The notes beneath the pieces were generated by a model, which was given only the letters and a program-made list of their open reading frames with translations, did no database searches and was not told where the DNA came from. A DNA stretch of 64,000 nt from Rebecca billardiae RCC1528. Lineage: Eukaryota; Protista; Haptophyta. Where the stretch lies: positions 930,001-994,000 of the forward strand of contig OZ251234.1 of NCBI GenBank assembly GCA_965240325.2, given 5' to 3'. Of the stretch, positions 1 to 57,327 are shown in pieces; position 1 is the stretch's first letter, and every line of letters starts with the position of its first letter. Both the position numbers and the translations under genes were made by a program.

Positions 1-690
1 GAGACGATCGGAATCTGACGTCTGACGACTGTGACGTGTGCATGCAGCATGGCCATGCGCTTCGCGGCCGTGTCTGCCCGAGTGCCCGTGACTGAGACTC
101 AGGGCCGAATCCGGAACTTTGGCGGGCATCCGCGGGCCGAGACCCGAACGTGGCGAGTCCAACCCCCGAGACCGACAGAGCAGCGCAGTGGCGGAGTCCG
201 CGTTGGCAACCGTTACCAGCCAGCGGCCCACGGGCTGCTGGCGGCCGGGCAGTTAATATGATTATGTAAATACTATTAATAATATTTACAATAGCACTGT
301 ACCTCAGCTAGTGAACAGTGATGCCTGATGGCATGCCGTACGGCTTACAGTCACTCACTCAGTCAGTAGGGATGACGAGTTACTCCGTAGTCAAACGTGA
401 AACGAGTAACGACCGCCGCGCAAATAGATATAGGTAGGCCGAGTAGTTAGCCGAGGGATTAATCGAGTGAACTCTGATGACTGAGAGCTTGAGACCTCAG
501 TCAGGCGGCGGGCTGCCGCAATTGGCGCAATGACAGCCGCAAATCGCAATGCTATTGCTAATAATGCTTAGACGAGACGGCCCATGATGCAGTCGATCTC
601 ACTAATGATGCGCTTACGACGACGACTGCGGTACTTATTTATGCGGCTCGCGGCAATATGGTTCGTCGTCATTTCGTCGACGCTGCCTCA

Positions 691-1162: not shown

Positions 1163-2605
1163 TCATCTGCCGCCGCCGCCGTGGTGCGCGTTGCCGTTGG
1201 GCGCCCCGTTGCCGACGGCGGCACCGTCGGGCGAGGGCGCGCTCGAGACGCGGCCTGCGTTTGAGCCACGCCGAAGCCCGGCTGCGATCGAGCCGAAGCG
1301 GCTTGGCGCGGGCTGCTTGCTCAGCGGCTGCGCGCCGCGCGCGCCGGCGCGCGCCGGGCTGCCGTCCGTGCCCGCCGCCTCCTCGCGCAGCAGCCGCTGG
1401 TGCAGCGCGCGCTTGCCCCAGAACTTCTCGTACTTCTCCGTGTCCGGGTCGCGCTGCCGCAGGATCAGCTCGGTGTCCTCCTCGATGCTCACGCCGAACT
1501 GCTCGAGCGGCAGGTCGTTGGCGTCGGTGCCAAACGGGTTCTCGATCTCGCTCGCGACGGCGTTGATGCCGAGCAGCGCGAACGCGAGCAGCGTCGACAT
1601 GAACGGCGTGAACCCGCCGAACCGCCGCGCGAACGTGAAGGGCGCGGAGAAGACAAAGATGAGCAGCAGGAGGTTGAGCATCTGTACGTACGGGTACGGC
1701 AGCGGCGTGCGCGCGATCCGGTCGGCGGCCATCCACGCGCCGACGAGCTCGTTCAGCCGCTCCTCGACGATGCGCACGTCGTACTTGGTCAGCCGCCCCG
1801 CGCGCACCGACTCGTTCAGCCGGAACGAGAGCCACTGCGCGACGATCGAGACCCGATTCTTGAGCTTGCGCAGCACCTTGACCTCGTTGGGCGTCACCAT
1901 CGACATGTACGGCAGGGAGAGGTCGCGCCGCCGGGGCTCGAGCTCGAGGTGCTGCCGGATCACGGCGTACAGCATGTTGACTAGCCGGCGCAGCTCCGCG
2001 CGCTCGATCTGCGCCGCCTCGTCGTCGCCTGCGCGCGCGACCCCGCCACGCGCGCGGGCCGATCCGTCAGCGGCGGATCGTGCGCGCGAGGAGCGCGCCG
2101 CACCGCGGCACGCGCGCGCGCGCGGAGCACGCACCCTCGCAGTACGAGGCGATGAGGCGCATGATCTCGCGGCATGACTTGACAATCATGCCCACCGCGG
2201 AGCGGCCCTCCCTGCGGGTCAGTCACACGCGCACGGCGCGCACACTCATGAGGGGCGAAGCACAAAGCGACACGCGACGCCTGCGCGGCGCACATCAGGC
2301 GCGCGCGCGCACCAGTATCGTGCGTACGCGTTGTTGCTCCGGAAGATGAGCAGGAAGCCGAGCGGGAAGATGAGCATCGAGTGTATGTGGTTGTCCACAA
2401 CCTCCTCATCCGGGTCGTCCAAGCTCACGAGCGACGCGCCCAGGAAGTCGGCCGCTCGCCTCAGCACGACTCCGCGCACCGCGAGGAAGTAGGCGAAGAA
2501 GCCGAAGCCCACGGCGAGCAGCAGCTCGATGCGAATGGCGGGCACGACGGAGCCGCGCCAGCGGAAGAGGAGCATGAACCATTCCTTTGGGTCGTACACG
2601 ATCAT
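1163..2605 (-). CDS. Bestrophin-family anion channel (bacterial/YneE-like type), 3 exons
   Basis: Motifs MIVYDPKEW..RGSV, GFLLIFRSNNAYARYWEGR, RIARTPLPYPY, EIENPFGTDANDLPL. GT-AG introns at 2212-2312 and 2029-2134 join the ORFs in frame. Confidence 0.92.
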
Positions 2606-8736: not shown

Positions 8737-8829
<93 letters not shown>

Positions 8830-8851
8830 CACGATATATATATATATATAT
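8737..8851. repeat. (TA)n microsatellite, interrupted once
   Basis: Directly visible in the sequence. Confidence 0.98.
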
Positions 8852-8930
8852 TTAATAAATTGATCTGCTGCAGCATGCCGCGTGCAGGCAATGATCTGAG
8901 CCCGACTGAGGTGTGCATTGGAGTCATCAG

Positions 8931-9039
<109 letters not shown>

Positions 9040-9263
9040 CTGATCATCGACGAGATTCGTACGACGACAATTTCAGCGCAGCGACAGCATGAGGCTGAGC
9101 AGTACGGGAACGTGTGAGTCAGTCTCAGATGAGTAGCACGACTATACGACTACTGCTGTCCCATCGTCAGGGCCGGACGATATAGGGGCACGACGACTGC
9201 TGAGACGCGCGCGCGGCTCGTCGTCGTCGTCGTCGACTCGTCGAGTGGCAGTCAGATGTCGCG

Positions 9264-11321
9264 TCACCGCTGATGCTGATACTGATGATGACGGCGGGGA
9301 CGCCCCCAGCGATACTCGTCGATGAAGTGCGCGCACGCGTGCCTGTCCGCGAGGTGCTCGGGCGCGAGCCCGACGCCCGCCCTCGCCGCCAGCCGCATGG
9401 CGAGCAGCAGCTGCGCATCCGACGGTGCACCCGGCCACACACTGCCGCTGCTGGCGGTGGCAGCGGCGCCTGCCATGTGGACTGGCGCGTGGCGCGCCGA
9501 GGCACCGCCGCCCGGCAGATCGGCTGCATGGCCCGCCGGTGCAGCGTGCGCCGCGTGCGTTGCGCCCGCGAGCGCGCCGCGGCGCGCGGCATCGGCGCCG
9601 CCCGTCGGCTCCTCGCCCGCGCACAGCCCCTGCGCGCGCAGTGGACACTCTGCGCAGCGCGGCTCGTGCGCGCACATCGTCTGCCCCAGGCCGACTAGAA
9701 GCGGGTTGAGTGGCGCCCACAGCTTGCGCGGCAGCCACGCCTCGAGGGCGAGGCGCGTCTTCCCGGCGGACGCGCCGCGCGGGGCCCAGCCCAGCCGCTG
9801 CGCCACGCGCTGCACGTGCGTGTCCACGCCGATCCCGTGCACGTCGCCCCATGCCACCTGTGTGTACAGATGGGCCACTTTCGGCCCTACCCCTGGCAGA
9901 GCCTGCACGGCGCTCAGCTCGCGCGGCGGCTCGCCGCCCGCGTCGAGCGCGGCGCGCGCGCACTCGAGGGCGTACCGCGCCTTGTTCCGCCAGAACATCA
10001 CGCCCGCGTCTCGCAGCGCGAGCTCGACGTCCGCGGGCTCGAGCGCGACGAGGGCGGACGCGCTCAGCTCGCCGCCGCACAGCGCAGACAGCGCGGCCAC
10101 GCCGCGCGCCGTGTGCTCGTCCTGAGTGCGCGCCGAGAGCACGAGGGCCACCAGCGTCTGGAAGCGGAAGGTGGGCGGCGGCGCGGTGCGGTCGCCGAGG
10201 GTATGGCAGCCCACCACGTCCACCGGCGCCTGCGTGCGCGCGCGGTACGCTTCGATGGCGTCGAGCTGCGCGCGCCAGCGCGGCGGCGCGCCCGCGCCGG
10301 CCGCGCCCTCCGCTGCCGCGCGCTCGACGGCGGCGCCGCCCGCCGCCGGCGTGGAGACAGCTGCGTCGCCGGCCGCCCCGCCGGCGGCGTCCGGCCGCGG
10401 AGCGGGGGAGTGCTCGCTCGGCGAGGCCACGACCGCGCCACCTGCGCCACTGCCGCCCGCGGCGGCAGCAGCGTCGGCGCGCGGCGCGCGAGGCGTCGGC
10501 GCAGCGCCGCGCAGCACAACAGCCCACGCCACCGGTGCCGCGCCACGCGAGCTGAGGTAATCGTTCGCGCGGCTGAAGTAGCGGCCGCCGAAGAAGCCGC
10601 CGCGGTTGGCGCCGAGCGGCGAGGGGTGCGTGCCCTCGAGCACGAGGTGTGCGGACGCGTCGATCAGCCGCGCCTTCCTCCGCGCCGCCGCGCCCCACAG
10701 GATAAAGACGAGACCGCTGCGCCGCGCAGAGAGCGCGGAGACAGCGGCGTCTGTGAGCGTCTCCCAGCCGCGGCCTGCGTGCGAGGCGGGCGCGCTCGCG
10801 CGCACGCTGAGCACCGTGTTGAGGAGGAGCACGCCGTCGTCCGCCCACGCGCCCAGGTCACCGCCCTGCGCGCCGCCCTCGCCCTCGCCCAGGTCTTCGC
10901 TCAGCTCGCGCAGGATGTTGCGAAGCGACGGCGGCGGCATGACGCCGCGCGGCACCGAGAAGGCGAGGCCATGGGCCTGACCGGGCTGATGGTACGGGTC
11001 CTGGCCGAGGATGACGCAGCGGACACACTCGAACGGCGTGCGAGCGAACGCGGCGAACGTCTGCTCCTCCGGCGGGAACACGGGCGCGCGCGCGCGCTCT
11101 TCGCGCACAAAGGCCTCGAGCGCTTTCAGCTCGGCGCTCTCCAGCTCCGGGCGCAGCGCCGCTGCCCATGACGGCTCGATGGCGCCCTCCCACGCAGCGG
11201 AGGGCGGCGCTGCTGCGGATGCGCGCAGGTGGCGCACGCGTGCGCCGGCCAGCCCCGCCCGCACGTGGGCCACTCGCGCGAGAGGGATGAGCGTGAGGGT
11301 CGCAACCACCGCCATCGTCAT
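9264..11321 (-). CDS. Fusion of family-1 uracil-DNA glycosylase and endonuclease III (Nth, HhH-GPD, 4Fe-4S), with putative organelle presequence
   Basis: Single open frame. UNG motifs GQDPYH, AHGLAFS, PPSLRNI, VLLLN, HPSPL. Nth motifs APVD..GC, RFQTLVALVLS, LPGVGPK, GIGVDTHVQR and a 4-Cys cluster (C..PRCAECPL...LC). Start is ATG 11321 or 11315. Confidence 0.93.
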   Translation of the reverse strand: MTMAVVATLTLIPLARVAHVRAGLAGARVRHLRASAAAPPSAAWEGAIEPSWAAALRPELESAELKALEAFVREERARAPVFPPEEQTFAAFARTPFECVRCVILGQDPYHQPGQAHGLAFSVPRGVMPPPSLRNILRELSEDLGEGEGGAQGGDLGAWADDGVLLLNTVLSVRASAPASHAGRGWETLTDAAVSALSARRSGLVFILWGAAARRKARLIDASAHLVLEGTHPSPLGANRGGFFGGRYFSRANDYLSSRGAAPVAWAVVLRGAAPTPRAPRADAAAAAGGSGAGGAVVASPSEHSPAPRPDAAGGAAGDAAVSTPAAGGAAVERAAAEGAAGAGAPPRWRAQLDAIEAYRARTQAPVDVVGCHTLGDRTAPPPTFRFQTLVALVLSARTQDEHTARGVAALSALCGGELSASALVALEPADVELALRDAGVMFWRNKARYALECARAALDAGGEPPRELSAVQALPGVGPKVAHLYTQVAWGDVHGIGVDTHVQRVAQRLGWAPRGASAGKTRLALEAWLPRKLWAPLNPLLVGLGQTMCAHEPRCAECPLRAQGLCAGEEPTGGADAARRGALAGATHAAHAAPAGHAADLPGGGASARHAPVHMAGAAATASSGSVWPGAPSDAQLLLAMRLAARAGVGLAPEHLADRHACAHFIDEYRWGRPRRHHQYQHQR

Positions 11322-11375
11322 GGTTTTCGCGCGGCCCGTTTGTCTGCACGCTCCGTGCGTTCGTGCAGCAGCGAA

Positions 11376-11975
11376 ATGGCGATGACGTCGCTCACGGCAA
11401 TGCTTGCTATCGGCTTCGCAGGCCACCCGCCGCGGCTGCATCTGGCGCGTGCGCGGACGCTCGGGCAACCCATGGGGACACGTGTGAACGCCATCATGGC
11501 CGATGACGAGCAGGTCTCGCGCGCGAAGGGCTTTGGCGCGGACGCGGAGGCGCGCGCAGCCAAGAAGCTGGACGCGCTGCGCACGCCGGAGCAGCGCAAG
11601 CGGCTGGAGCAGAAGGCAGAGCGCCTGGAGCTCGAGGAAATGGTTCGCGAGGAAGGGCTCGACCAGATCCCGGAGGCCGTCAGCGATCGGATGATGAATC
11701 GCATGCTCACCTTCCTCGGCGTGCCGCTCTTCCTCGGTGTGGCCTCGTTTGTTGGCTTCATCGTTGCCGCACGCGTCTTCGACACGACTGTCCGACCGAC
11801 AACCGTCGCGACGACGACTCAGGCCATCTTCGCGCTCGCACTGATCGGCATCACATACGGCCCGCTCTCCGCCTCTTGGGACGAGGATCGCGAGGGGAGC
11901 TTCTTCGGCTTCGAGGAGGTGAAGAAGAACATCGACAGCCTGTTCGAGTCGATGAAGTCTGATGTGACGAAATGA
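11376..11975 (+). CDS. PAM68: PAM68-like photosystem II assembly factor (DUF3464)
   Basis: IPEAVSDRM..RM, two transmembrane helices, GITYGPLSASWD..REGS.FG.EE...N. N-terminus looks like a plastid-targeting presequence. Confidence 0.9.
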   Translation: MAMTSLTAMLAIGFAGHPPRLHLARARTLGQPMGTRVNAIMADDEQVSRAKGFGADAEARAAKKLDALRTPEQRKRLEQKAERLELEEMVREEGLDQIPEAVSDRMMNRMLTFLGVPLFLGVASFVGFIVAARVFDTTVRPTTVATTTQAIFALALIGITYGPLSASWDEDREGSFFGFEEVKKNIDSLFESMKSDVTK

Positions 11976-12624: not shown

Positions 12625-13236
12625 TATATATATATACTCAGAATAATAGTTATTAGTGAATTGACGTCAGACTGGCTTTAGAATTAGAAGTTCCGGCGCC
12701 ACTCGTATGTGTATAACGTCACTCACTGAGTCACCGGCGGCCCTACTGTAACGTGTCTACGTTCGCGTAAGCCTGAGTAAGTCAGAATGGCATCATTTAT
12801 TCATTACAACACCGGTACAATACTGAACTGTATAGCAGTAGTAGAGTCTAAGTACCGCCACGTGTCCGACGTAGTACTAATATTCCGCGGCCGGAGTCCC
12901 GCGGCCCGCGGCCGGCGGGTGCCACTCCTACGCGTCGTCGTCGGTCTCGCAGTCGCAAGCGCCAGCCGGCCGCGACCCGCGTGACCCGCGGTGCCGCCGT
13001 GACGCGCCGTCAGATGAAGCCTCGCCGACCCTCTCGGACTCGCGGACCTCGCTCGATCCCGCGTTCACGACGGCGTGTGCTCGAGCCCGGCGTGGGCATC
13101 ATCGTCGAGTGCGACAGCCGACGTTCGTCATTCAGTCCTGCGGCTGCGTGCTCGCGTGCACGCGCATCGGCCACCCATGGAGGATCGCCTCGCGCGCACT
13201 TCTCGCGCCGTCCGTCCGAGAAGACTGGCCGCGCAA

Positions 13237-14299
13237 TCACGAGGACCGCCGCCCACGCCGCCCACTCGCCTGCGTGCGCGGCTGCGCCTCCGGCGGCTGC
13301 GTGCCCTGCGACGCGGCGAACTGGTCCTTGCACGCCTCGGCGAGCGCGCCCCAAGCGTCCTCGTTCAGCTCGACCGGCGCGCGCGGGCCCTCGATCAGCA
13401 CCTTCTCGTTGTCCGGACCGCCCGCCCTGTGCGCCGCGCGGGGCAGGCGGGGAGGCGGGCGTCGGCGCGGCGGGGGGCGCGCGGCGCGCCGCGCGGCGCG
13501 CGCACTTGGAGTACTGCAGGTACATGTCCTTGACCATGCGCTTGGAGATGACCTCTTCGAGCGGCGGGAAGGGCCGCGCCAGCCGCGTCTGCTCGTTAAG
13601 CCCGATCGTGCGGAGCACGGTGAAGAGCGTCTTCTCGCTGACGCGCTTGTCCGAGTGGCGGATGATGCCGATCGTCACGAGCACGAGCGCGAGGTAGAGC
13701 TCCTCCTCTTTGGGCACCTCCGGCTCCATGCCCCGCGGGTGCTTGAGGGTGTTGACGAGCACAAGGCGCGCGTTGGCCGACTTGGCCGCCTGCGTCTCGA
13801 CCGGCTCGTTCTCCGCGGCGGCGCCGTGCGGGCCCTTCTTCGACTCCTCGTCCATCGCGTGGCTGTCCTTCAGCAGCTGGATGTCCATCCCGAAAGTCTC
13901 CTTGAGCTTCGTCCTCGCGTGCTCGAGCGCATAGTCGAGCATCCGACCGCCCGCATGGCCGCCCTTCTCGCTCAGCACCGCCTTGCGCAGATCGGCGCGT
14001 GTGACACCCCGCTTGCTGTGCTCGTGGAAGAGGAAGTAGCGGCCGATCTCGGCGGCGATGCGGTCACGCTCGTCGTCGGGCATGTTGATTTGCGTGCCCT
14101 GCGTGGGCTGCTCCTCGCGGTCGTCGTCCGACTCCTCCGGCTGGGTGCGTGCAGCCTACGCGAGGCGGGCGCGGTGTGGTGGGTTGATCAGGCAAACGAG
14201 GGCGCCGAGATGCGACGCGCGCGCCACGCGGCCTGGGTGCGGTGGTACCTTCTTTCGCTGCGAGCCGGCGCCCTCCCCGCTCGTGCGCTTTGGGGCCAT
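13237..14299 (-). CDS. NSE3: MAGE-domain protein, NSE3 subunit of SMC5/6, 3 exons
   Basis: RYFLF..SK..VTRADL, A..KL.ETFGM, LVLVNTL, V.E..L...L..IG, V..MYL, GPRA..E. A short exon 1 (MAPKRTSGEGAGSQRKK) and an intron at 13427-13505 restore the frame. Confidence 0.82.
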
Positions 14300-14781: not shown

Positions 14782-16128
14782 ATGTCCGCCAAGCGCACCA
14801 CCCCTCCTACTCCTGCCGCTGGCGACGAGCGCGGCGAGAACCAGGAGGAAATGATTGCCGGCGCGCGCGCGACGACGGACGCGCGCGTGCCACCCGCGGG
14901 CCAGGCGCGCCGGAGCGCGCGCCTGGGCACCGGCCCCAAGACCAACGCCGAGACCGGCGACGCCGCGCGCGGCGGCGTCTCCGGCGCTCCTCCGCGCTCC
15001 ACGGCGCGCGCTGCGGCGCGCGCTGCGGGCTCGGCCGCGGCGTGCGACGACGACGACGGCGACGGCGGCGGCGACGACGACGAGGACTGCTCTGGCCTCG
15101 AGGGCGACGAGGGCGGGGACGCGGACGGGGACGGCGATGGCGGTCGGCCGCCGACACCGGACCCACTGCGCCGCGCCGCTCTGCCCGGCGCTTCGCCCCG
15201 GGCCGGCTCCGGCCTTGAGCGTCTCTCCGAGCAGGTTGAGTCGATCGCCACGTCCATGTCGGCCTTTCAGGACGTGATGAGCTCGCTCGTCGAGCGCATG
15301 GACGCGCAGGGCGCCGCGATCGAGGCGCTGCAGACGCGCGAGCAGGACGGCCGCGGCGTCAACTCGGAGGACGAGGCCGGCCGGCGTTACGCCCCGGTCG
15401 CCGACAACAACCCGTTCCTCCGCACCGTCAACATCCCGGGGGGCCAGAAGGTGAAGCCCCAGCTCTTCACCGAGTACGGCAACTGGGCGATCCAGCGTCT
15501 CCACAAGGGTCACGGGGAGCTGCGCCAGCAGTCGGCGGTTTGCCGCAGCGTCGTGCTCAACTCGTCGTGCCTCTTCTCGCTCTTCAACGCGGAGCGGGAG
15601 CTCGAGGCGATCATCGCGGACCTGAACGCGGGCGAGGAGATCACGGGCGACGACGTGCAGCGCGTGCTCAACACGGTCGACGGCGTTTCCAAGATGCTCC
15701 ACCGCGCCTACTCGCTCGACTTGGTGCGCGCGCGCTTCCCGAAGGAGCTCAACGCGGCGCAGCGCGCCGAGCTCGACTTCATCTCCGAGTTCGTCGAGCG
15801 CCGGATCGACGCGGCGGACGGGGTCCCGCTCGACGCCGACGTCGCGCGCGCGCAGGAGGAGTACTTCCGCGCGGCCAAGGCCTCGCACCTGCGCGTGCTG
15901 GCGGCGACGGGCCGCGGCTTGGGCGGCGTCGAGGCCGATGGTGGCTCGGACACGGGCGCGCACTCGGAGCTCGGCGGCGGCGGCGGACGCCACGGCGGCG
16001 GCGGCGCAGGTCGCGGCTCCGGCCTCCGCGGCCGCGGTGGCGGCGGCGGCGGCGGCGGCTCGGGCCGTGGGGCCGGCGGCGGCGGCAGGGGCGCTGCCGC
16101 CGGCGCGCAGCGCGCCTCTCGCAAGTGA
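14782..16128 (+). CDS. Gag-like ORF1 of the YR retrotransposon
   Basis: First ORF after A1. Acidic/coiled-coil N-terminal half, helical core, Gly/Arg-rich tail. Assigned by position. Confidence 0.75.
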   Translation: MSAKRTTPPTPAAGDERGENQEEMIAGARATTDARVPPAGQARRSARLGTGPKTNAETGDAARGGVSGAPPRSTARAAARAAGSAAACDDDDGDGGGDDDEDCSGLEGDEGGDADGDGDGGRPPTPDPLRRAALPGASPRAGSGLERLSEQVESIATSMSAFQDVMSSLVERMDAQGAAIEALQTREQDGRGVNSEDEAGRRYAPVADNNPFLRTVNIPGGQKVKPQLFTEYGNWAIQRLHKGHGELRQQSAVCRSVVLNSSCLFSLFNAERELEAIIADLNAGEEITGDDVQRVLNTVDGVSKMLHRAYSLDLVRARFPKELNAAQRAELDFISEFVERRIDAADGVPLDADVARAQEEYFRAAKASHLRVLAATGRGLGGVEADGGSDTGAHSELGGGGGRHGGGGAGRGSGLRGRGGGGGGGGSGRGAGGGGRGAAAGAQRASRK

Positions 16129-18535
16129 GGCGCGGCGAGGGGGCCCGCCGGCGCGGCGCGGTGGCGGGGGTGGCGGTGGCGATCGCTCGCCGCCGCCTCC
16201 CCCGCTGCCCCGACGTGCGCGCCCACTGGGGCGCGACGCCGGGCCGGCGCCGCCCCCTCGCCACCGGCCGCGCGCGCGCGCGGGCGACTCCCCACTTGGG
16301 AGCGCGCGCGCGCGCGGCCGGTCGCCGACTCCGCGCCCGGCCTTCCGGGCGCGCGAGCGGGCGGACGCGACATCGCGCCCGCCCGACCGGCGGAGCCGGC
16401 CCCCGTCGTCGGGGGCCGGCTCCTGGCCCGCCCGCATGGGCGGGCCGCAGCTCGCCCACGGTGGCGACTCGTCATCCCCGCCGGCGCGGCGCGCCCCGAC
16501 GCCGCCGCCGGCCGTGCGCAGCTCGCCCAAGCTGCGCCACCGCGTCCGCCGGCAGCTGGCCGAATGGCAGCGTGCCGGCGCGTCCCCGCGCGTGCTGCGA
16601 TGGCTGCGCGAGGGCGTGCGCTGCCCGTGGCTTCGCGGGCGGCCGCCTCCGCCCTTCCACTTGGGCGAGAGCCTGACGGACGCGACGCCCGAGCAGCTCG
16701 CTTTCCTCGAGCAGGAGACCGCGCGCTGCCTGGCGACGGGCGCGTGGGAGCCGGCGGAGTGCCGCTCGCACGTGAGCCGGGCCTTCCTCGTGCCCAAGCC
16801 CACCCCGCCCGGGGCGCCACCCAAGTGGCGCCTGGTGGTCGACCTCCGCGCGCTGAACGAGTGGTGCGCGCCGGCCAGCTGCCGCTACGAGTCCCTCCGG
16901 CGGCTGCAGCGGCTCGCGCGTCGAGGCGATTGGATGCTATCCTTCGATCTGCAGGATGGATACCACGCCATCGGGATCCATCCCGAGCACCGGCGCTACT
17001 TCACGTTCAGCCTGCCGGGGCCCGACGGCGCGCCGCGCTACTTCCAGTGCGCGGCGCTGCCCTTCGGCTGGAACCTCAGCCCATACGTCTTCACCAAGGT
17101 GATGCGCGTGATGGTGCAGCAGCTGCGCGCGCCGCGCGCGGCGCCGCGCGTGGCTCAGCGCGCGGGCGCGCTGAGCGCGGCGGCGCGCGCGCTGCTGCGG
17201 CGCGTCCGACGGCGCGACCCGGCGGCGCGCGGGATGCGGGTGCTGCCGTACGTGGACGACTTCCTCATCGTCGCCCCCTCCCGCGACAGCTGCCTCGCGT
17301 GTCGGCGCTTCGTCCAGCAGCTGCTCGACCGGCTCGGCCTTGTCCGCCATCCGGACAAGGGCTTCTGGGAGCCGACGCAGCGGCTCGAGCACCTCGGCAT
17401 CGAGGTGGACACCGCGCGCGGCCTCTTCCTCGTGCCGCCGCGCAAGCAGCAGCAGATCGCAGCCCAGGCTCGCGAGCTGCTCTGCGTCGCCGCGAGCCGC
17501 CGCCGGCTCGTCTCGGCGATCCAGCTGTCCTGCCTGGTGGGCCGCGCTCAGTCGGTGCACCTCGCGTGCCCGGCCGCGCGCTTCTACCTGCGCGAGCTGC
17601 ACACGGTCATCGCGTCCCGCGCGTCGTGGGGCTCGCTCGTGCGGCTCACGCGGCAGGCGCTGCGCGACCTCCGCTGGTGGGCGGCGTTGCCCACCGCGGC
17701 GGTGAGCCGGGCGATCTGGCGCTCGCCGGCCGAGGTCACCTTGCACTGCGACGCGAGCCGCCGCGGCTGGGGCGGCATGCTGGAGGAGACAGTGCCAGCG
17801 CACGGGTTTTGGACGCCGCGCGAGCGAGGCCACCACATCACGTACCTCGAGCTTCTCGCGGTACAGCGCTCGCTCGACGCGTTCATCTCGCGCCTGCGTG
17901 GGCGCGCCGTCCTCCTATGGGAGGACAACCAGGCGGTGCGGCAGATCCTCACGGCGGGCACGTCGCGCTCGCGCGAGTTGATGCGGCTGCTGCGCCGCGT
18001 CTGGTGGCTACTCGACTCGGAGGGCATCGACCTGCGGGTCGAGTACATCCGCTCCGAGGACAACGTCGGGGCGGACTCGCTCAGCCGGCTGCGCGCGGAG
18101 GACGAGACGTCGCTGCGCCCGGCGGCCTTTGCGGCGCTCGAGCGCCGCTGGGGGCCGCACACGATCGATCGCTTCGCGGCGCCGGACAATCGGCTGCTCG
18201 CGCGCTGCAACGCGCTGACTCCGGCGGGCGGCGCGGTCGAGGCGGTGAACGCCTTCTCGCGCGATTGGCGCGGCGAGAACAATTACGTCTTCCCGCCGAC
18301 GCGGCTGCTCGACCAGGTCGCGCAGCTGCTCGAGGAGCAGCGCCCCGACGCGACGGTGGTCGCGCCGTACTGGCCCGCGCAAAGCTGGTTTCAGCGCCTC
18401 TTCGAGCTCTCGGCCGATCTCGTGCTGCTGCCGGCCAGCAGCTCGGTGGACGTGCACCCGGCGGCGTCGCCGCGGGTCATGCGGGCAACGCACCTCGCGC
18501 CGCTTGCGGTTTTCCGCTTGCGGCGGCGCGGGTGA
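15938..18535 (+). CDS. Reverse transcriptase - RNase H - DNA adenine methyltransferase-like polyprotein
   Basis: RT: WRLVVDLR.LN, DLQDGYH, LPFGW..SP..F, YVDD. RH: CDAS..GWG, HITYLELLAV, EDN, N..ADSLSR. MT: IDRFA...N, NAF..W, YVFPP, VAPYWP.QSWF. Confidence 0.95.
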   Translation: MVARTRARTRSSAAAADATAAAAQVAAPASAAAVAAAAAAARAVGPAAAAGALPPARSAPLASEARRGGPPARRGGGGGGGDRSPPPPPLPRRARPLGRDAGPAPPPRHRPRARAGDSPLGSARARGRSPTPRPAFRARERADATSRPPDRRSRPPSSGAGSWPARMGGPQLAHGGDSSSPPARRAPTPPPAVRSSPKLRHRVRRQLAEWQRAGASPRVLRWLREGVRCPWLRGRPPPPFHLGESLTDATPEQLAFLEQETARCLATGAWEPAECRSHVSRAFLVPKPTPPGAPPKWRLVVDLRALNEWCAPASCRYESLRRLQRLARRGDWMLSFDLQDGYHAIGIHPEHRRYFTFSLPGPDGAPRYFQCAALPFGWNLSPYVFTKVMRVMVQQLRAPRAAPRVAQRAGALSAAARALLRRVRRRDPAARGMRVLPYVDDFLIVAPSRDSCLACRRFVQQLLDRLGLVRHPDKGFWEPTQRLEHLGIEVDTARGLFLVPPRKQQQIAAQARELLCVAASRRRLVSAIQLSCLVGRAQSVHLACPAARFYLRELHTVIASRASWGSLVRLTRQALRDLRWWAALPTAAVSRAIWRSPAEVTLHCDASRRGWGGMLEETVPAHGFWTPRERGHHITYLELLAVQRSLDAFISRLRGRAVLLWEDNQAVRQILTAGTSRSRELMRLLRRVWWLLDSEGIDLRVEYIRSEDNVGADSLSRLRAEDETSLRPAAFAALERRWGPHTIDRFAAPDNRLLARCNALTPAGGAVEAVNAFSRDWRGENNYVFPPTRLLDQVAQLLEEQRPDATVVAPYWPAQSWFQRLFELSADLVLLPASSSVDVHPAASPRVMRATHLAPLAVFRLRRRG

Positions 18536-54874: not shown

Positions 54875-55702
54875 TTATCCCGCGACGGATCCCAAAAGGA
54901 CGCCTCCCAACGCTCGACGCGCGGCTGCCGCGCCGGGCCGCTTTGCGGGATCGACGGTCAGCAGCCGGCGGCAGAAGCGTACGGACGCCGCGCTCGGCGC
55001 CGGAGGCGGCGCATCCGCCAGGTCCAGCACGCCCTGCGTGCTGTACGCAGTGAAGAAGCGGTCGCCAGCGTCGGCGCGCTCGAACGGGAACTGTCCGACG
55101 AACATTGCAAAGGCGCACACGCCGGCCGCCCACACGTCCGCCTTGAACGGGTCGTGCGGCAGCTTGGCGAGCACCTCGGGCGCGGCGTACTCCATCGTCG
55201 CGTACGCGGGGTAGTCCACGTGAACCTCGTTGATCGAGGCGCAGCCAAAGTCGATCAGCTTGATGAGGTTGGTGTCTGGGTCGAGCATCAGATTCTCGAG
55301 CTTGATGTCGCGGTGCGCGATCTTCTTGCTGTGCAGATACACGAGCGCGTCGAGCAGCTGGCCAGTGTACGTGAAGGCGACGCGCCGGCTCGGCTTGGTG
55401 TACTTGACGACATCCGAGACGCTGACGCGCAGCAGCACGGTGAGCATCCATTTGCTGTCCTCCTTCTCCACCAGCTCGATGAATTTGACGATGTTGCGGT
55501 GGCTCAGGTCCTTGATAACGATCTCTGCCGTGATGTCCACACCCGGAGCAAACTCCTTGGCTGCCACCACCTCGCCGTTGTGCCGCGTCATATACACCGA
55601 GGCAAAGTGGCCCGCCCCGAGCTTGCGCGATCGGACGTGCGACATCTCAGGCATCGTCAGCGTCGCCATCCCTCCAGTCGCGCACGAGGTGAAGGCTCCC
55701 AT
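54875..55702 (-). CDS. Ser/Thr protein kinase (CAMK-like), intronless
   Basis: LGAGHFASV, AAK, HRDIKLEN, DFG, YAAPE, DVW..G, DP.KRP. MGAFTS myristoylation-like start. Confidence 0.93.
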   Translation of the reverse strand: MGAFTSCATGGMATLTMPEMSHVRSRKLGAGHFASVYMTRHNGEVVAAKEFAPGVDITAEIVIKDLSHRNIVKFIELVEKEDSKWMLTVLLRVSVSDVVKYTKPSRRVAFTYTGQLLDALVYLHSKKIAHRDIKLENLMLDPDTNLIKLIDFGCASINEVHVDYPAYATMEYAAPEVLAKLPHDPFKADVWAAGVCAFAMFVGQFPFERADAGDRFFTAYSTQGVLDLADAPPPAPSAASVRFCRRLLTVDPAKRPGAAAARRALGGVLLGSVAG

Positions 55703-56322: not shown

Positions 56323-57327
56323 TCATCCTGATAATCGCGCTGCGCCGAGCCTCGCGTCGGAGACCAGTAGCACGTCGTCGTCGGTGCCGAAGGTGTGCCA
56401 CGCCGCCTCCAGCTGCTCGCAGGGCACGCTGAGCAAGCTCGGTCCGGACGCAGGGTCGAGCACGCGATACGCGTCCCGCGCCGCGCTCAGGCCGACAACG
56501 AGCACGTAGTGGCCCTGGTAGCCGCGCCTTGAAGCGCCGCTGCCGCCGTTGCTGACCGCGGGGCGGCCGGATGTGCCGTCGACGCCGACGTGTGCGCCGC
56601 CGTGCGCGCGAGCATCGCCGTCGGCACAGCCCATGCCGCCAGCATCGGCGCCGCTCTCGATGTGCGCAATGTCGTCTGGCGCGTCCACCCACACGTCCTC
56701 GTGCCCCTCGTCGTTTGCGGCCTCAGCCGGCTTGCGCGCGCGCAGTGGCGGGGGCACGAGTGCCTGCAGTGTGCTCGAGAAGAGCTGCCGCGCGACGAAG
56801 GCGGAGGACGCGGCGGGCGCTGGGCTCGGCGGAGCGGGCGCGCTCGCGTTGCGCTCTGCGCCCGTGCCAGGCGCGGGCAGCAGCAGCCGATCGAGCAGCA
56901 CGATGGCGAGCGTGTGCCCGGCGAGGAGAGCTGCGTGCAGCTCGGCGCGAGACAGCATCGCCTGCTCGACGCGCGGACTGCCGGCACTGGCGGCCTGGTT
57001 GAAGAGCTGCTCCACGCGCGCCCGGTCGTCGCGCAACCGCGCGCTGTAGAAGCCCAGAGTCTCGTACTCCGGGTTGCACCCGATCTGCGATGTGTAGTAG
57101 CGCGTCGCCACGCCGTACGACTCGAGGAGGAACGCGAGGTCGATGGTCCACACGCTGCGCGTCGACGCCTGCTCGCGCAGGTGCGCGGCCGTGCACGGGA
57201 CATCGAGCGCGCGGAGGACCATCTCGACGCACGCCAGCCCGCAGTCCCAGTTGTAGCTCTGGCGCACGTGTGGTACGAGCACCGCCCCTCCATCGCGGAT
57301 TCCTACGTCGCGGGTGGGGGCCTCCAT
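56323..57327 (-). CDS. GUCD1: GUCD1 / plant guanylyl cyclase 1-like protein (peptidase C39-like fold)
   Basis: VPHVRQ.Y.WDCGLAC..M, S.WTIDLA.LL, YQGHY, DP, GTD.D. Confidence 0.88.
   Translation of the reverse strand: MEAPTRDVGIRDGGAVLVPHVRQSYNWDCGLACVEMVLRALDVPCTAAHLREQASTRSVWTIDLAFLLESYGVATRYYTSQIGCNPEYETLGFYSARLRDDRARVEQLFNQAASAGSPRVEQAMLSRAELHAALLAGHTLAIVLLDRLLLPAPGTGAERNASAPAPPSPAPAASSAFVARQLFSSTLQALVPPPLRARKPAEAANDEGHEDVWVDAPDDIAHIESGADAGGMGCADGDARAHGGAHVGVDGTSGRPAVSNGGSGASRRGYQGHYVLVVGLSAARDAYRVLDPASGPSLLSVPCEQLEAAWHTFGTDDDVLLVSDARLGAARLSG

Follow-up and report, generated by a model that had tools for sequence, protein, structure and literature searches.

A single-chain UNG and NTHL1-type endonuclease III fusion in the haptophyte Rebecca billardiae, a candidate initiator of organellar uracil repair

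Two DNA glycosylases of base excision repair (BER), uracil-DNA glycosylase (UNG) and endonuclease III (Nth), are normally encoded by separate genes. In the haptophyte Rebecca billardiae RCC1528, both are found in one open reading frame (ORF) on the reverse strand of a 64,000-nucleotide stretch of contig OZ251234.1 (assembly GCA_965240325.2, positions 930,001 to 994,000), the whole of which we refer to as the window. This locus raises the question whether a single protein is encoded here and, if so, what the joining of the two enzymes could achieve. As a monofunctional enzyme, UNG stops at an abasic (apurinic/apyrimidinic, AP) site; endonuclease III excises oxidised pyrimidines and also cleaves abasic sites, using a lysine residue for beta-elimination. 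In textbook BER the abasic site left by UNG passes to an AP endonuclease, and the in vivo use of the AP lyase activities of bifunctional glycosylases is debated. We propose, with a probability of roughly 60%, that the window gene encodes a real chain of UNG, linker, NTHL1-type endonuclease III and a C-terminal module, which is targeted to an organelle and would work as a two-step initiator of uracil repair. Directly supported are the identity of the domains, their intact catalytic residues, the conserved fusion architecture and the disordered linker. Both domains are ordinary, well-understood enzymes, so that the protein constitutes an architectural variant and not a new mechanism; what is new is the uncharacterised joining of two known enzymes.

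The first domain is a family-1 uracil-DNA glycosylase. Over its whole extent it exceeds the cut-offs of the NCBIfam models NF003589 (264 bits, cut-off 223) and TIGR00628 (236 bits, cut-off 185.75), both covering residues 48–268, and between residues 100 and 256 that of Pfam UDG (47.9 bits, cut-off 24.3). Among solved structures in the PDB, cod, human and bacterial UNG are matched with E-values of 1e-61 to 5e-59. Similarity to the family-1 enzymes human UNG1 and UNG2, E. coli Ung and Arabidopsis AtUNG is full-length and all four signature loops are present (Table 1), with the LLLN and HPSPL motifs aligning to those of cod UNG. In alignment A2, which comprises the window protein and eight other UNG-NTH members, residues G106–Y110, N168 and H232–P235 are invariant. 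Like human UNG1, the window protein carries a short N-terminal presequence, and it is devoid of the long extension at the N-terminus of nuclear UNG2, in which the PCNA- and RPA-binding motifs are located. Known UNGs stand alone, are monofunctional and leave the AP site to an AP endonuclease, whereas the C-terminus of this UNG domain runs into a second glycosylase.

This second domain belongs to the eukaryotic NTHL1 type, since the match to human NTHL1 (7rds; E 9e-47 over 224 residues, aa 345–568) is far stronger than those to bacterial endonuclease III (8e-26 or weaker). Pfam HhH-GPD (PF00730) is found at residues 391–531 with 52.7 bits (cut-off 26.2), while the bacterial nth equivalog TIGR01083, a model made for bacterial and archaeal annotation, scores 80.2 bits and does not reach its cut-off of 211.7. 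With NTHL1, E. coli Nth and Arabidopsis AtNTH1/2 the domain shares the helix-hairpin-helix (HhH) motif with its Lys, the Asp of VDTHV and four Fe–S cysteines. Lys481, Asp500 and all four cysteines are invariant in alignment A2, and the Lys and Asp motifs align to those of human NTHL1. Judged by these residues, the endonuclease III domain is catalytically complete; the initial annotation of this locus, which had been made from the sequence alone, had read complete catalytic motifs in both domains, and the UNG loops, Lys481, Asp500 and the four cysteines could all be located. There are also differences from NTHL1 and Nth: the whole UNG domain and linker take the place of NTHL1's regulatory N-terminal tail, the cysteines are spaced C-x5-C-x2-C-x7-C compared to the canonical C-x6-C-x2-C-x5-C, and an additional conserved module is present at the C-terminus. 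The same cysteine spacing recurs in P0099, a homologue from a Logan sequencing-run assembly (SRR30664515, L012 5001–6812), which is the nearest relative of the window protein (65% identity in UNG).

Whether the two domains belong to one protein is a question on which ORF continuity alone offers no proof, since at 86% GC chance would be expected to leave the linker free of stops. The linker is in fact free of stops in all six frames and 73% of shuffled sequences stay open (P = 0.73); in every single genome tested the shuffle test was non-significant (P 0.17–0.73), and the open linker was therefore dropped as evidence. The ORF across both domains described by the initial annotation is real, but that a stop-free linker is statistically uninformative at this GC content had been overlooked. 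It could consequently be argued that two adjacent genes on the same strand, or two exons with an in-frame intron between them, appear as one ORF because stops are rare, all the more as another frame on the same strand has just one stop across the gene and the fusion is known from DNA alone. We consider this explanation very unlikely in view of the comparative evidence. At least eight further lineages share the in-frame join, some of them with genomes of 64–66% GC, where the coding frame stays open over about 1.8 kb against 7–22 stops in the other frames. Linkers vary in sequence and in length between homologues (35–92 aa), the reading frame is always kept, and with 105–276 nt they are too short for a terminator and a promoter. 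In the window protein there is no in-frame Met from residue 128 to residue 442, the linker included, so that the Nth part lacks a separate start codon, and four of the first five loci examined likewise show Nth without an in-frame Met. Repeat-number variation in the Aureococcus linker also preserves the frame: in P0064 (L013 385–2412) the linker is made of a 14-residue repeat, and the Aureococcus sequences in one 90%-identity cluster, that of P0035, to which P0064 belongs, range from 574 to 675 aa. GC content at third codon positions (GC3) stays at 0.73–0.97 throughout the linker of the window gene, whose coding frame holds no internal stop against 1–12 in each of the five others, and whose domain-coding parts are colinear with the homologues, with no insertions. 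One related contig from JGI (L014) lacks a 3'-terminal poly(A), which is compatible with DNA or RNA origin alike. Taken together, the conserved order and frame, the absence of a Met for Nth and the in-frame length variation lead us to conclude that the window ORF, as read from DNA, encodes a real single-chain UNG and endonuclease III protein. The assignment of both enzymes to one ORF thus stands, with Pfam, NCBIfam and PDB matches for each and the same order in other algae.

An AlphaFold2 model built from a nine-sequence alignment agrees with this architecture. Two folded domains are predicted, the endonuclease III domain being helical with predicted local distance difference test scores (pLDDT) of up to about 95, and they are separated by a disordered stretch (aa 273–339, pLDDT below 50), in line with the Ala/Gly/Pro linker that had been noted earlier. 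Further disorder is predicted at residues 570–633, 645–665 and 668–685, that is, in the tail that follows the endonuclease III domain. The initial annotation had described the two domains, the linker and the presequence correctly and had missed the conserved module within this tail. Aligned to the C-terminal end of P0099, the module shows 19 invariant positions, and GC3 in this part of the gene is 0.87–1.00; the stretch is therefore coding and conserved. Searches against Pfam (E up to 10) and with a PDB profile search returned chance-level matches only; a SAP/HeH-like DNA-binding motif was considered for the module and has no support.

The reading frame is bounded by an enclosing stop-free ORF at 9264..11468, and translation from the ATG at 11321 gives the 685-residue protein. 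GC3 is 0.57 upstream of this codon, climbs to at least 0.80 at it and remains within 0.70–1.00 as far as the stop. A further in-frame ATG at 11441 was rejected as the start, since it lies in the region of low GC3 and would overlap with the PAM68 coding sequence (CDS) on the opposite strand. A Logan contig from run ERR14847148 yields an identical 685-residue protein, and the PAM68 neighbour is present there too.

To place the fusion among its relatives, homologues were searched with scoring on the Nth domain and restriction to proteins of similar total length, a restriction which biases the result towards fused ORFs. The order UNG-to-NTH is found as one ORF in Aureococcus anophagefferens (KAK7239826.1, KAH8071672.1, KAH8083903.1), in clusters P0034–P0037, P0040 and P0041 from Tara Oceans and other metagenome contigs, and in P0099. 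Aureococcus and at least seven further cluster lineages align over their full length with the window protein at 41–50% identity, and the catalytic residues of both halves are invariant in the relatives aligned in A2. When a profile of the fusion was searched against 1.84 billion representative proteins, the architecture was recovered in three 50%-identity clusters (P0041, P0033 and P0099). The UNG-to-NTH architecture is therefore rare and not widespread. A closely related stand-alone NTH exists as well (P0105, 256 aa, whose upstream 1 kb contains no UNG), which makes the fusion lineage-specific and not universal. A scan of metagenome contigs with UNG-domain patterns from A2 kept 80 loci, 79 of which match UNG residues only, the match at the remaining one (L081) spanning about 1.4 kb; some of the contigs carry the label of human-gut metagenome assemblies. 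The ESM Atlas feature search with the whole protein gave no usable match.

UNG has also been joined to other AP lyase glycosylases. A whole-protein search revealed single-chain Fpg/H2TH-to-UNG proteins of 650–715 aa in diatoms (P0019, P0020, P0024, P0027, P0028, P0031), namely in Skeletonema menzelii (KAL7491597.1), in Proboscia alata (MMETSP0174) and in related metagenome sequences; they are covered by MMETSP transcript models and have an N-terminal extension of about 120–140 aa. Like the window protein they combine UNG (44–47% identical) with a bifunctional glycosylase/AP lyase in one chain and in an alga with complex plastids, but their partner is of the H2TH/Fpg and not the HhH-GPD family and the order is reversed, with UNG at the C-terminus. 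In bacteria, Nth-UNG and Nth-UNG-UNG proteins are found (P0001, P0098, P0102 and P0103, the last including MEB3162659.1 from a metagenome-assembled genome of Prochlorothrix sp.), which contain the same two Pfam families within one chain as the window protein, but again in reversed order, with an Nth of bacterial type (36% identity) and a UNG from a separate clade. P0001 (L001 2592–4862) and P0098 are of the Nth-UNG-UNG kind; the second UNG copy of P0001 has GESPA in place of GQDPY and is probably a catalytically dead module that binds uracil or AP sites. Bacterial Nth-ExoIII proteins (HhH-GPD with Exo_endo_phos, about 480 aa, P0042–P0058), a sizeable family met among the matches to the Nth domain, likewise couple consecutive BER steps in one chain; their Nth is joined to an AP endonuclease instead of an upstream glycosylase, and they are distant from the window protein (35–39% identity).

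When UNG domains were placed in a quick maximum-likelihood tree (IQ-TREE), the UNG-NTH, Fpg-UNG and Nth-UNG proteins fell into three separate groups, supported at 98 for Fpg-UNG and at 80 and 94 for the other two, which suggests that UNG was joined to an AP lyase glycosylase three times; the diatom Fpg-UNG proteins are of independent origin, their UNG forming a separate clade. Some UNGs that are partial or have no fusion partner sit between members of the UNG-NTH group, and gains and losses within it are not settled by the tree. The profile search further returned UNG-UNG proteins and one UNG-RNase_T protein. The latter cluster, P0108, has 12 members of about 630 aa that combine UNG with an RNase_T/DEDDh 3'-5' exonuclease, and its UNG is placed by the tree within the UNG-NTH group; here too UNG is coupled, in an undescribed way, to an enzyme that processes DNA ends. 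Neither the full-text literature that we searched nor a review of glycosylase evolution contains a UNG-Nth or Fpg-UNG fusion, the former offering no description or test and the latter no mention. No characterised example had been known to the initial annotation either, and public protein databases contain the UNG-NTH architecture without any remark on it.

Where would such a protein act? Its first 15 residues are uncharged and strongly hydrophobic (maximum Kyte-Doolittle hydropathy 2.23 over 12 aa) and are followed by an Arg/Ala-rich stretch (aa 16–47) with five Arg and Lys against one Asp or Glu, in agreement with the N-terminus described by the initial annotation. AlphaFold2 predicts a low-confidence helix at residues 2–34. 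The presequence is patterned like the plastid PAM68 presequences of the same window and of Diacronema lutheri, and it plausibly fits the signal-peptide-plus-transit-peptide import into complex plastids. In ochrophytes, an aromatic residue (or Leu) usually stands directly after the signal-peptide cleavage site; residue 16 of the window protein, right after the hydrophobic run, is Arg and does not match this pattern, while in the Aureococcus protein the hydrophobic run is followed by Phe, which is plastid-like. We regard targeting of the fusion protein to an organelle as likely, with the plastid favoured ahead of the mitochondrion as its destination. An organellar role of these enzymes has precedent in Arabidopsis, where NTH1/NTH2 and the AP endonuclease ARP reside in chloroplasts, with NTH in nucleoids, and UNG in mitochondria (PMC6728418).

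Given two intact active sites joined by a flexible tether, a two-step initiator of uracil repair is the most economical reading of the protein; its enzymatic activity, its hand-off in cis and its localisation are what we infer from the sequence. The hydrophobic-then-basic presequence would direct the protein to an organelle, preferably the plastid and possibly the mitochondrion, where the UNG domain would excise uracil from organellar DNA and leave an abasic site. The tethered Nth domain, present at high local concentration, could then cut this site by beta-elimination via Lys481 and Asp500. Uracil repair would thereby begin without waiting for an AP endonuclease, and the Nth domain may in addition remove oxidised pyrimidines independently of UNG. 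The independent Fpg-UNG and Nth-UNG fusions suggest that UNG and AP lyase are functionally linked.

A number of observations weigh against this reading. Beta-elimination leaves a blocked 3' end that needs a 3'-phosphodiesterase, so that the pathway would not be free of other enzymes. The N-termini of the homologues are heterogeneous and several of them look rather mitochondrial; some of the homologue starts, called by a prokaryotic gene finder, are unreliable, and some N-termini are very short or non-hydrophobic. P0099 carries LPGVGPW in place of LPGVGPK, which replaces the catalytic Lys by Trp, and VDSKV in place of VDTHV, while the C-terminal module and the four Fe–S cysteines are retained. 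Lyase and glycosylase chemistry have thus probably been lost from the Nth domain of P0099. Coupling to a lyase is consequently not universal, and at least one lineage keeps the fusion without it.

The persistence of the fusion in P0099 also speaks for a serious rival, a passive tether. Both activities would then be independent, no AP site would be handed over, and the join would provide co-expression, equal stoichiometry and a single targeting peptide. A long, disordered linker that is conserved neither in sequence nor in length is what such a tether would look like, and the related stand-alone NTH P0105 is likewise in its favour. The argument against it is that UNG was joined three times specifically to AP lyase glycosylases, twice to Nth and once to Fpg, and this argument is itself weakened by the UNG-RNase_T and UNG-UNG fusions. 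We hold the passive tether to be a real contender, though clearly less probable than the two-step initiator.

The retention of four identically spaced cysteines in P0099 after loss of the catalytic Lys, together with their invariance in A2, could also mean that Nth serves mainly as an Fe–S platform for DNA binding and lesion scanning, which recruits UNG in a nuclear or dual-targeted enzyme and does not act as a lyase. Some very short or non-hydrophobic homologue N-termini would fit such a location. In the window protein and all eight other A2 members, however, Lys481 and Asp500 are invariant, and the window N-terminus has neither a basic cluster resembling a nuclear localisation signal nor a long extension of the UNG2 type, so we judge the platform role highly improbable. 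The two-step initiator thus remains our preferred reading. A more far-reaching version, in which the protein works in plastid nucleoids (or in two organelles) and turns uracil directly into a strand break in cis, and in which the three joins mark a UNG-to-AP-lyase branch of BER, is tentative and, as a whole, less likely than not.

Table 1. Features of the fusion gene and its divergent neighbour; nucleotide coordinates refer to the window, residues to the 685-aa protein
Feature	Residues	Coordinates	Strand	Basis or remark
Fusion CDS, 685 aa		9264..11321	-	Stop at 9264-9266; read from ATG at 11321
N-terminal presequence	1-47	11181..11321	-	Hydrophobic run, then Arg/Ala-rich; putative targeting function
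Family-1 uracil-DNA glycosylase domain	48-268	10518..11180	-	NCBIfam ung equivalogs, PDB matches, motifs
GQDPYH, water-activating loop with catalytic Asp108	106-111	10989-11006	-	Motif reading
PPPS	129-132		-	Motif reading
LLLN, uracil-specificity Asn168	165-168	10818-10829	-	Motif reading
HPSPL, Leu-intercalation loop with catalytic His232 and Leu236	232-236	10614-10628	-	Motif reading
Ala/Gly/Pro-rich flexible linker (~75 aa)	269-343	10293..10517	-	pLDDT, composition
NTHL1-type endonuclease III domain	344-568	9618..10292	-	PDB, Pfam HhH-GPD, motifs
LPGVGPK, HhH motif with catalytic Lys481	475-481	9879-9899	-	Motif reading
VDTHV, catalytic Asp500	499-503	9813-9827	-	Motif reading
[4Fe-4S] cluster	C550/C556/C559/C567	9621-9674	-	Motif reading
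C-terminal extension (117 residues)	569-685	9267..9617	-	Mostly disordered, low pLDDT, then conserved module
Conserved C-terminal module (~35-45 aa)	633-667	9321-9425	-	Aligns with P0099 C-terminus
PAM68/DUF3464, thylakoid biogenesis factor		11376..11975	+	Pfam DUF3464, E 2.8e-36

The PAM68 gene is divergent from the fusion gene, and just 54 bp lie between one start codon and the other, which makes this bidirectional layout extremely compact. Its closest named homologue is that of the haptophyte D. lutheri (64% identity), the genome of which has a GC content of 73% and 45% single-exon genes (PMC8379373); this one gene suggests that the window probably comes from a haptophyte of pavlovophyte-like kind. 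Elsewhere in the window, ORFs with strong GC3 bias encode a MAGE-homology (NSE3-like) protein (13010–14083, reverse strand), a bestrophin-type channel fragment (1163–1975, reverse strand), a Guanylate_cyc_2/peptidase-C39-like protein (56323–57327, reverse strand) and a protein kinase (54875–55702, reverse strand), which confirms a eukaryotic nuclear setting. About 200–480 bp 3' of the fusion stop, long (TA)n and (GA)n microsatellites lie within a sharply AT-richer stretch (8780–9050), and about 4.6 kb from the fusion gene a retroelement ORF of 865 aa with reverse transcriptase and RT-RNase H is found on the forward strand (15938–18535).

The conserved UNG-NTH architecture and the independent Fpg-UNG and Nth-UNG proteins amount to 'Rosetta-stone' evidence that the respective repair steps are functionally linked in some lineages. 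The UNG-NTH protein offers a ready natural system in which hand-off and independent action of BER steps can be measured against each other, and it would provide a named component for the almost unknown organellar DNA repair of haptophyte and pelagophyte algae, groups which include bloom-forming species. If the protein does convert uracil to a strand break in cis, the start of uracil repair would be independent of AP endonuclease in these organisms. UNG-NTH in haptophyte- and pelagophyte-type algae, Fpg-UNG in diatoms and Nth-UNG in bacteria would then represent an unrecognised branch of BER that is favoured in organelles and bacteria.

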